From contig OZ037770.1 in assembly GCA_964035545.1 (NCBI GenBank), positions 12,514,642 to 12,578,641 on the forward strand: DNA of 64,000 nt, in the 5' to 3' direction. The translations under genes and the position numbers were made by a program. The stretch comes from Bugula neritina. Lineage: Eukaryota; Animalia; Bryozoa. Every line of letters begins with the position of its first letter. The first letter of the stretch is position 1. Positions 22,878 through 46,968 of the stretch are shown here, piece after piece. The notes beneath the pieces are model-generated. The model worked only from the letters and a program-made list of their open reading frames with translations. It was not told the origin of the DNA and made no database searches.

Positions 22878-25800
22878 ATGGCTGATGTCCATGAAAAACC
22901 AATCACAAACTTTGTGTTAACTGGAAAGGAAGCAAGTGGTGATGGTCTATGTATGTCAGTACCTAGTACTTCTAGATGCGAGTTTACAGCTCCTTCTCTG
23001 AGTACTCTCATAGATTTTGTTGAGATTTTGTCATGTAAGTCTGTTTTATGCTATGAATTTTCCTACGTACAATATTATTGTCAAAATGATCGTATGTGAA
23101 GATAAAAAAACAGTTTTTTCAGCCTTTCTATGAGTAAATTAACATTGAAAAGCAAATTATTCAAAAGTTTTTTTCACAAATTTAATCACGTCATACGTTC
23201 ATACTAGTCTGTGCAATAGTATAGCATCCATTGCTTATTTGTGTTTTCTGCTAGTATGTAATGTAATGTTTGTTACTGCAGATGATGTAACAAATATAAT
23301 GTTAAATAGTCTTGCTGCTTTTCTATTGTTGCACAAACTGTTAATTTTTCAGACCTGTATTCTCAAGAAATACTAAGTAAGTTAAAGAATCCAAGAGGCA
23401 CAGCTAACCAAGATGACTGTCTGCCTGCAACACGTGATGAATCAAAGGTATGGTAGAATTCTCCCATGAGACACCTTTTTAGGGTATCTGGAAACTTACC
23501 TACTGTTTCATATGACATTAATCATGGAAATTCCTTTTATAACAAGTTGTTTTTTATAGAAGCATGGCTCTGGTGGAAAAGCTTCTGCTGATGGTTAGTG
23601 ATTTTCTATTTTATATAATTAAAAGTGCCATGCTATTTGATGGAAGTGGAATTGTTGCTGATTTCTGAGATTTGGCTGCTGTTTAAGTAAAAACTTGTAC
23701 AGTCTCAGATGTACTCCTTTGCTCTAGTACTTTAGACAGGCGTTTTAGTTCTCAAGTTTATTAAACTTAGACTGGAACCCAGAAGACTTTAGTCAGCTGG
23801 TCATACGTTGCAAAGCTACATAATTGCATTCATGTGTCATTGAAATATGCTAAATTATTGTTAATAGTAGCCAGAAATGACATGGGGCAACAGATTTTAA
23901 TTTTCATATATGTTGTTGGCAGTCTCAATCAAGACATATTTGGGTAGAATACTCAAGTTTTCAATGTAAAAGCCGAGCCATAGTACATTGTAAAAATCAC
24001 TATGGTAGATGAGTTTGCTTTTAGGTTGCGTTGAAACACGCGAAACCGAAACGTTCAAAGTAGTTCTAAATGAGCTAAGATCAGACCATGAATATCTGAA
24101 ACCTCTGCCCATTGAGATCTCACCTTACACATTCCTCCTATGTCTTAATAATCATGCACCTTTTCCCCTTTTGGCTCTGCCGAAAAAGTTCGGTGAGTTT
24201 ATTCTTCATTTGCATGGATTTATGTCTGAATTTCCAAAGAAAAAAGATATAACTCTGACAGTTTTTATGATTGCATGTTTGACATTTTGGGATTTGCTTT
24301 TAGTTAAGGCTGGCAAGACCTTTCAGGTGAGTTTCTGTACTTTTCTGAGAGGTTTTGCTTCCAAATTATAACTTTGCCTTTGAAGGAAAATCTGCTGGTT
24401 AGTTGACCTATTTGTGAAATGGTGGTGAGAAAGATATACTTGTGTAATAATGTCTAACTTGATAAAGAATAAATATACGTATTTCATCAAATGAATCAAT
24501 TTTCAGGGGCTGGTCCCGCACACGATACGGATGAGCTTCAAGAAGTTCTTAAAGGACTAAACTCGGACTACTTGTGTGAGAATGCTGAGAAAGATTTGTA
24601 TGTTCTGTCAATTTCTTGCACCTGTCTGTAGATACTGATGAGCTACAGGAAATCCTAAAGGAACTAAACTCAAACTACAGATATCTGAGACCTCCACCCA
24701 CTGAGATATTTTGTTACACGATCCCTCGCTATCCTAATAACCACAATCCTCTACTTCCTCTGGCTCTGCAGAAAAAGCTCGGTGAGCTAACACTTTATCA
24801 TGTGATTTGGTTTCTTTCAGTTGAAATGGGAATAAAAATAAAATAAATTAATTCTTTATTGTTGGCTGTGTTTTATTTATCAGCTGTGTTAGTTGTACAG
24901 GTAACTGTTTTATTGGCCATGTTATGATAATTAGGTAAAGGAAACTAGCTAACTAGTGATAAATATATTGTATAATAATACAGTTAGATAAAGTATCAAC
25001 CCTGTCCTGCTACTGTAGATGAAATGGCTCCAAGAGAGTTTCTAACTTACGTACTGAAAGAGTTGACTCTAGAAGAAAGAGAATCACTGATGGTGGATGA
25101 GAGACAAAGAAGAAAGAGTTTCCTCGTTAACTGGCCTCATACTAATAACCTTTCTGGCGTGAAGATGGCTCAGGCTGGCTTTTATTGTGTTGGTGGGTTT
25201 CACAATGCGTGAGGCACTTCAGTTGCTTTTTTTTCTGTGTTTTATTTGACTTTTATGATGCCTTCACTTAGTTGGAAATGTTTCTATTATTCTGTTTGTA
25301 CAGACAACTATGACAGAGTGCAGTGTGTATTCTGCCGGGGAAGTCTCCATCACTGGGAGCGAGACGACAACCCAATGACTGAGCATGCTCGGTCCTTCAA
25401 CTTCTGCCGATTTGTCAAAGGACTGGAATGTGATAACAGAGAGTACAAGGGTAACTTTATTAAGCCCTATAAACTGAAGAATATCAATTTCTATGGAGAA
25501 CCACCAGGTAATAGAAGTATTTTTTTGTAAAAATATTACGAAAATTGCTTCAAATCTGTTATAAAATTAAGGGATGAAGTTTTTCCTAATTGCCAAGTTC
25601 TATACTCTTCTTTCTCAAAGTAAAATTTAAGACTGCAAGATTTAAACTACAATTATCAAGGATAATGGATGATTTTTTGTATGAGTTATACAATATTTCT
25701 AATATTTGCATCATTTGAATGTAATAATAGCACTAAACCTTCAACATACTCCACACAAAATGTATGTTTCTTCAATAACAAGAAAAAATAAGCAATCATT

Positions 25801-46778: not shown

Positions 46779-46968
46779 ACCTAACTGTACTTGACCTTTG
46801 TTGCAGGCGACCCAGATTGGCTTGCCGTGTGGTCATGTGATTTACTGTGACAGATGCAGCAAGGAGGAAAAGACGAAGACTAACGTCAACAAGCACTACA
46901 AGTCTAAGTGTCCTTACTTCAACTGCGGGGCACCTCTGACAGGAACCTTTAAGTTTTACATCAATTAG
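22878..46968 (+). CDS. IAP array: candidate single gene with three tandem BIR-BIR modules + UBA-like + RING (~1330 aa); alternatively three paralogues, two of them truncated
   Basis: Leader exons: 22878-23034, 23353-23447, 23560-23593, 24025-24192, (24507-24575). Module 1: 24632-24781, 25019-25192, 25304-25507, 25852-26010, 26095-26197, 26326-26413, 30005-30074. Module 2: 31653-31820, 32286-32459, 33924-34127, 34378-34545, 34630-34732, 35054-35141, 36690-36804. Module 3: 38111-38278, 38744-38917, 39943-40146, 40397-40564, 40649-40751, 44536-44623, 45517-45586, 45798-45943, 46198-46312, 46503-46606, 46807-46968 (TAG). All are GT-AG, stop-free and phase-compatible. Confidence 0.6.
24632..30454 (+). 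CDS. IAP module 1 (BIR1+BIR2 plus a UBA-like exon that has lost its donor; no RING)
   Basis: [28 protein letters not shown] and [28 protein letters not shown]. The UBA-like exon starting at 30288 runs into SINE sequence and stops at TAG 30452-30454. Confidence 0.85.
26597..29190 (-). mobile_element. RTE-clade LINE (degenerate endonuclease + RT) in an IAP intron
   Basis: [45 protein letters not shown] and [12 protein letters not shown], with a short tandem AGGTGAGAAG tail. Absent from the paralogous introns. Confidence 0.92.
29343..29686. mobile_element. PIF/Harbinger-type MITE (~68-bp TIRs)
   Basis: GCCTAGGGCCACACGGTGCGTATTTTCGCATGCG...CGCATGCGAAAATACGCACCGTGTGGCCCTAGGC. An inverted copy lies at 52282-52624. 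Confidence 0.88.
30434..30630 (+). mobile_element. 5'-truncated tRNA-derived SINE at the module 1/2 duplication junction
   Basis: Matches the SINE at 36906-37120 from its GGGG(C/T)TAGAGC onward. Confidence 0.75.
31653..36804 (+). CDS. IAP module 2 (BIR1+BIR2; UBA and RING exons absent)
   Basis: Seven stop-free exons with both BIR zinc-ligand sets intact. It has no start exon or terminal exon of its own. Confidence 0.85.
32653..33074. mobile_element. Solo LTR
   Basis: TGTAGTGAATTT...AAATCCATTACA with 4-bp TSD GTAT. The paralogous intron at ~39100 shows the empty site. Confidence 0.85.
34772..34985. repeat. (GAGT)n microsatellite in the BIR2-splitting intron
   Basis: Long GAGT run. A degenerate version is at 40790-40940 and short versions at ~26240 and ~9660. 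Confidence 0.95.
36137..36610. repeat. 20-bp minisatellite (~23 units)
   Basis: Tandem TGTGTTATATTACAGTACA(A/G)C units with no spacers. Confidence 0.95.
36906..37120 (+). mobile_element. tRNA-derived SINE
   Basis: A-box TGGTCTAGGGG and B-box GAGTTCAAACCC, followed by an AGGAAGAGCATCCAGTCATAA core. Confidence 0.7.
38111..46968 (+). CDS. IAP module 3 (BIR1+BIR2+UBA-like+RING, terminal)
   Basis: Eleven stop-free exons collinear with the minus-strand gene. RING is [53 protein letters not shown]. The first exon is an internal phase-1 exon. Confidence 0.9.
40957..41931 (-). mobile_element. Tc1-like transposon remnant
   Basis: TA|CAGT...ACTG|TA ends and a degenerate DDE region (YQQDNA...KKVKKW...[12 protein letters not shown]). 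The minus-strand paralogue shows the empty site at ~9645. Confidence 0.85.
42841..43050. mobile_element. Probable MITE / inverted-repeat element
   Basis: AACATGGCCTAGTCCGGA ... TCTGGACTAGGCCATGTT, flanked by GACAATT-type repeats. Confidence 0.5.
43320..43728. mobile_element. Foldback-type MITE, nearly fully palindromic
   Basis: GGGTCATTTTACTTAATTTAGTACACACTG...CAGTGTGTACTAAATTAAGTAAAATGACCC. The arms pair imperfectly for well over 100 bp and AATT flanks both sides. Confidence 0.85.
43758..44398. mobile_element. Probable MITE
   Basis: Imperfect TIRs ATTTACGCTTACCGTAC / GTACGGTAAGTGTAAAT. Absent from the paralogous intron. Confidence 0.55.
44819..45142. mobile_element. PIF/Harbinger-type MITE
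   Basis: TAA|AGGCCTTGCCTCAC...GTGAGGCCAGGCCT|TAA. A relative lies at 56984-57164. Confidence 0.85.
45980..46117. repeat. 20-bp minisatellite (~7 units)
   Basis: Same unit as 36137-36610. Confidence 0.9.

Follow-up and report, generated by a model that had tools for sequence, protein, structure and literature searches.

A candidate six-BIR RING-type IAP gene formed from fused paralogues in the bryozoan Bugula neritina

Organization of the IAP locus

The window, a 64-kb stretch of chromosome 6 (12514642-12578641) in the 216-Mb assembly of Bugula neritina that also sets the coordinates used below, contains an IAP locus composed of a leader and three modules, each of which encodes a pair of BIRs (Table 1). 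Three single-module paralogues, P0, P1 and P4, flank the locus on the opposite strand. All module exons have the AG/GT borders and the phases that an earlier note on this DNA assigned to them, and the ~30 exons at the locus are free of stops and frameshifts; since module 2 is young and nearly identical to module 3, however, its intact frame carries little weight. The two proposed exits, G1 and I2 (36690-36804), end in phase 1, and exons A2 and A3 start in phase 1, so that the modules fit together as had been claimed. Module 2 lacks exons G and H, and its remaining F2-I2 junction joins phase 0 to phase 0. A scripted join of the exons gave 3909 nt encoding 1302 residues, with six BIR cores and one RING in a single frame and no internal stop, in place of the 3993 nt (about 1330 residues) summed before; depending on the use of uncertain small exons, the joined length varies from 3672 to 3942 nt (1223 to 1313 residues). 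What looks like a stop downstream of BIR2 (26198) is the start of an intron and was rejected. The exons on which the earlier note relied all proved real, but it does not mention the UBA-like exon H1, which follows G1 after an intron of 213 nt.

Table 1. Features of the six-BIR locus and its flanking paralogues
Feature	Position	Strand	Description
Paralogue P0	~21-30 kb before the window	-	
Paralogue P1	3368-12520	-	
ATG exon	22845-22950	+	Proposed ATG at 22878; splice acceptor at 22844, frame open up to the ATG
Leader exon L2	23353-23447	+	Conserved in P0 and in L029
Leader exon L3	23560-23593	+	Use predicted from phase only
Leader exon A0	24025-24192	+	Use predicted from phase only
Leader exon A1	24507-24575	+	Use predicted from phase only
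Leader exon A	24632-24781	+	
Module 1, exons B1-F1	25019-26413	+	BIR1 and BIR2
LINE reverse-transcriptase fragment	26666-27950	-	Decayed; lies within intron F1-G1 in antisense orientation
Exon G1	30005-30074	+	Starts in phase 0, ends in phase 1; proposed module 1 exit
Exon H1	30288-30433	+	UBA-like; acceptor intact, donor deleted
SINE-like repeat and intron	30434-31652	+	5'-truncated repeat, then intron homologous to the P1 leader intron
Module 2	31653-36804	+	Exons A2-F2 (BIR3, BIR4) and I2; G and H deleted
Fusion intron, modules 2-3	36805-38110	+	~95 nt of P0-type I intron, SINE-like repeat, P1-type leader intron
Module 3	38111-46312	+	Exons A3-F3 (BIR5, BIR6), G3, H3 (UBA-like, 45798-45943) and I3
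Exons J3 and K3	46503-46968	+	J3 (46503-46606) and K3 (46807-46968); sole RING, and stop
Paralogue P4	Just past the end of the window	-	Diverged

Between the modules, neither RING exons J/K nor a 3' UTR nor remnants of leader exons were found. The proposed ATG may not mark the first exon because its exon begins at a splice acceptor. A further exon probably lies upstream of 22845. No homologue of the hydrophobic (transmembrane) front exon of P0 was found in 12500-23400, and the ATG exon itself has a splice acceptor.

The leader holds a repeated exon A (24025-24781), comprising A0 (~70% identical), the partial A1 and A, all of which run from phase 1 to phase 1. The peptide encoded by exon A has no known domain and is placed before BIR1 in bryozoan IAPs. 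In the neighbouring P1, the donor of exon G is lost and the last intron contains a LINE and other insertions; its private changes comprise 12 synonymous and 26 replacement changes, and its frame would be kept if G and H were skipped. The repeat-rich region between P1 and the six-BIR gene contains a tandem duplication of ~790 nt (15021-16681, 94% identity).

Domain composition and comparison with known IAPs

Domains were searched one exon at a time, and assignment to the IAP (BIRC) family was based on at least one BIR of the form C-x2-C-x16-H-x6-C. The expectation of six BIRs and a RING in Pfam was borne out for the BIRs: each of the six core exons carries this pattern and scores 45-50 bits against PF00653 (cut-off 22.9), which assigns the product to the IAP family. 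A complete C3HC4 RING pattern spans J3-K3 at the C-terminus, as in a RING-type IAP; K3 alone, however, reaches 23.2 bits against PF13920, below the 27-bit cut-off, because an intron splits the RING. Exon H3 gave a weak, below-cut-off match to UBA_9 (E 0.015).

Type II BIRs, which bind the IBM, are marked by E/Q76, H77, W/H80 and C84 (PMC8917759). This signature is complete in BIR2, BIR4 and BIR6, which match the structures of ML-IAP, cIAP1 BIR3, XIAP BIR3 and DIAP1 BIR2, whereas BIR1, BIR3 and BIR5 have E76 and H77 but S80 and are type II-like only. An acidic residue preceding the zinc histidine, predicted to hinder caspase binding (PMC7768685), is present in all six BIRs, which makes their ligands uncertain. 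By analogy with established IAP biochemistry, a six-BIR chain would present three to six IBM grooves per RING, with raised avidity, and the product would bind IBM-bearing proteins (caspases and antagonists) multivalently and ubiquitylate them like DIAP1 or XIAP.

The locus shares with RING IAPs of the DIAP1/XIAP/cIAP type the BIR zinc cores, the type II signature (here in BIR2, BIR4 and BIR6), a UBA-like region and the C-terminal RING, but differs in having six BIRs arranged as three near-identical pairs instead of two or three BIRs, and in lacking a CARD; its activity is predicted. The premise that IAPs carry one to three BIRs is outdated. Aphid IAPs reach five BIRs (PMC7768685), and a 2026 survey of 2843 IAPs reported between one and six short BIRs per protein as well as tandem IAPs that have fused, some of them possibly prediction errors (PMC13159474). 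Moreover, single-exon searches returned six-BIR and RING proteins in the tick Haemaphysalis longicornis (XP_077525638.1 and XP_077525639.1) and, as one uninterrupted 784-residue ORF, on a 4037-nt ENA contig (ERZ27245420 k141_315318). The architecture is therefore uncommon but not new. The tick and ENA proteins likewise end six BIRs with one RING, but they are of unrelated origin and have shorter linkers (whole proteins of 784-893 residues), whereas the Bugula modules are young paralogue copies and their joints can still be read in the DNA. In the Apis BIR3-RING-BIR2-RING models (PMC13159474) and Watersipora XP_067929371.1 (four BIR matches), multiple BIRs also come from joined tandem paralogues; the internal RING and UBA exons were deleted in Bugula instead of being kept, and the Watersipora models are possibly chimeric annotations. 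Closest to the locus are P0, P1 and P4 on the same chromosome, which have the same exons A-K and phases at 80-99% identity exon by exon, but contain one module each; in addition, P0 has its hydrophobic front exon. Homology searches, limited in length and excluding near-genome records, did not bring up a Bugula member of this subfamily at full length, and metagenome scans gave no match.

IAPs with more than three BIRs are for the most part known as automatic predictions, which the survey flagged as possibly artefactual (PMC13159474). At the Bugula locus the breakpoints are visible and one joint is confirmed in a second lineage, making it a convenient case for testing how high-BIR IAPs originate and whether extra BIR pairs strengthen binding; the locus alone does not alter IAP biology. 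In two Xenopus proteins (P0003 and P0005), six or seven BIRs precede FIIND and CARD, so that a BIR array ends in a tail like that of CARD8/NLRP1. Watersipora XP_067951498.1 (P0002) spans 174 kb, encloses another IAP model and is probably a chimeric annotation.

Origin of the modules and the fusion joint

The earlier note interpreted the three modules as an intragenic triplication, which is not the history that best fits the paralogues: module 1 resembles one of the neighbours, and modules 2 and 3 resemble another in their front introns. Exons B, D and H of module 1 are closest to P0 (96%), whereas its exon C shares 98% identity with P1. In most front introns module 2 is 96-99% identical to module 3, but its F-I intron is 90% like P0. 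In the fusion intron, the short P0-type segment is followed from ~36901 by a full-length SINE-like repeat, and the rest is homologous to the P1 intron upstream of exon A. The repeat has ~2500 candidates in the genome; ARAGORN and Rfam gave no support for a tRNA origin, and we therefore term it SINE-like only. Divergence between modules 2 and 3 is 0.4-3.7% in most introns but 9% in exons B and C, above most of the intron values; gene conversion blurs the history of the modules.

The simplest history would be a fusion followed by a crossover and two deletions, an order we infer from these sequences. Two tandem 2-BIR-UBA-RING paralogues, one P0-type and one P1-type, would first have been joined by a deletion ending at the SINE-like repeat, which took the RING exons of the first gene and the leader of the second; splicing of exon I (phase 1) to exon A (phase 1) would then have yielded a four-BIR gene. 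Module 2, a hybrid copy of recent date, may have come from a later unequal crossover, after which one deletion would have removed G and H from module 2 and another the region from the H donor through exon I from module 1. Judging from the phases, contiguous losses among G, H and I fall into six classes, of which two keep a path to exon A in frame; the two later deletions are both of these kinds (chance ~0.11 if the classes are unweighted).

The fusion joint was also found in an independent 2379-nt JGI contig (L032, sample 3300003318), located through a search with exon A3 that returned one protein. It runs in the same order, from exon I through P0-type intron, the identically placed repeat and P1-type intron into exons A and B, and its exons I and A are open with intact phase-1 splice sites. 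Compared to module 3, its introns show 153 substitutions and 12 indels in 1061 positions (~14% different), whereas its exons have no indel in 283 positions (P ~0.04; ~0.12 if only frameshifting indels are counted). Exon A of the contig has a pN of 0.13 and a pS of 0.29 against module 3 (p 0.034); the comparison with module 2 is not significant (p 0.24). The same I-SINE-A joint in such a diverged lineage shows that the I-to-A fusion is real, not an artefact of the assembly, and of long standing. The joint supports a multi-module gene, not six BIRs specifically, as the contig is too short to give the module count. At 2191-2310 of this contig, a truncated first copy of exon B is followed by a second acceptor and a full exon start, a recombination scar between paralogue types.

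That modules 2 and 3 are instead two haplotypes assembled in tandem, a reading to which their difference of 0.4-0.8% over 1.1 kb of intron lends itself, is very improbable. The 3' half and the joints of module 2 are its own, the I-to-A joint recurs in the independent assembly, and no second copy lies elsewhere in the assembly. Moreover, in X1, one of four Logan contig sets aligned to 29800-34760 (4961 letters) and the one that behaves like DNA, the private letters of H1 (30352) and module 2 (31700) occur at a depth of ~60, similar to that of the unique G1 flank, and the B-C intron has three forms, beyond what two single-copy haplotypes would give; X1, possibly the source sample, does not count as independent.

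Exon H1, expression and the predicted products

A fused transcription unit is supported by the lack of a RING between the modules, the symmetric phase-1 joints and the I-SINE-A joint of the diverged contig; other Bugula IAP clusters keep one RING per gene. The earlier reading of one gene rather than three holds to this extent, but its six-BIR product hinges on avoiding the donor-less H1. The acceptor of H1 matches that of the working copy H3 at all but one of the last 30 positions, while its donor is gone and the exon continues straight into the truncated SINE-like repeat, where read-through meets a TAG at ~30451. Two cryptic donors lie nearby, at 30320 (phase 1, in frame) and 30453 (leading to a stop). 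Skipping of H1 yields six BIRs in 1302 residues and use of the 30320 donor six BIRs in 1313 residues, whereas read-through or the 30453 donor yields a RING-less product of 517 residues with two BIRs. In a small empirical matrix the cryptic donors score 2.9 and 3.3, below all 17 genuine donors (5.7-11.6), which favors skipping of H1 under exon definition. AATAAA hexamers lie downstream of the read-through stop, and the same hexamers also occur in the intron between modules 2 and 3.

Pairwise dN/dS among the modules is 0.29-0.38, a range set aside as proof of selection since gene conversion confounds it. The changes private to module 2 (three synonymous and six replacement) are compatible with neutrality, while the exons of module 3 show constraint.

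These data bear on whether H1 functions as a poison exon or a terminal one, so that the main product would be the 517-residue two-BIR-UBA protein or an NMD substrate, with modules 2 and 3 rarely or never translated. The intact acceptor close to G1, the stop met by both read-through and the 30453 donor, the 96% identity of H1 to the working exon H of P0 (three synonymous and two replacement changes), the absence of selection of its own on module 2 and the similar damage around exon G in the neighbouring P1 all fit such a role, but the cryptic donors are both weak and one is in frame, all 18 downstream exons retain open frames and splice sites, and module 3 is constrained. Altogether, we regard a poison H1 as possible but rather unlikely. 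The chances stand about even that the locus is one fused IAP transcription unit encoding, if H1 is avoided, ~1300 residues with three pairs of a type II-like and a type II BIR, a UBA-like region and a RING; that the six-BIR protein is a substantial product could equally go either way. Splicing over both inter-module joints, translation and the ligands are predicted from the gene structure.

The other three Logan sets, X5, X6 and X7, behave like RNA, as indicated by zero depth over 30796-31625, one A-to-B splice joint and an E-to-F loose end, which shows that the IAP family is expressed. Neither the 30074-31653 nor the 36804-38111 joint nor a G1-H1 joint occurs in the contigs, an insensitive comparison as the ordinary B-C, C-D and D-E joints are equally absent; a high-copy repeat also swamped the table of loose ends. 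RNA contigs of exon H have letters absent from every copy in the assembly and from X1, indicating that the RNA runs come from other genotypes. At diagnostic sites the RNA contigs have the letters of other copies, never of module 2. The deepest X6 exon-A contig begins its alignment at 31652, a single base ahead of the exon, and fits an upstream exon that ends in G after a base other than A, which would be a leader exon and not G1 or exon I.

With the SINE-like repeat in 30434-31652 and an in-frame Met before BIR3, a promoter in this interval might drive a separate four-BIR-UBA-RING gene from the Met in exon B2. This is improbable, as the interval is the homologue of an internal intron of P1 without its upstream exon, and RNA contigs of the other genotypes have no depth over 30796-31625. 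About as improbable is that this haplotype carries the entire locus as a duplicate silenced not long ago. In its favor, no RNA contig could be assigned to the locus and no P0-like transmembrane front exon was found upstream; the ~30 undamaged exons and the retention of the old joint in another lineage speak against it. Returning to the fused unit, we consider it a speculative and unlikely extension that the IAP is expressed and its BIR valency still shifts with the number of modules, with the internal UBA exon lost twice and use of H1 deciding whether a six-BIR ligase or a RING-less decoy with two BIRs is made.

Related IAP genes also occur on other chromosomes. Two clusters on chromosome 7 rich in BIR matches were dismissed as ordinary tandem genes, each with its own RING. 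Chromosome 5 (6.76-6.85 Mb, L019-L027) and chromosome 7 (10.607 Mb, L028) together hold at least nine related IAP frames with an intronless BIR-RING part, two of which carry three BIRs; they were possibly retroposed and then tandemly amplified. The intronless IAPs of chromosome 5 share 89-95% protein identity with annotated Bugula neritina IAPs such as KAF6029130.1, and the assembled genotype would thus belong to the B. neritina sibling-species complex but differ from the one behind the annotated proteins.
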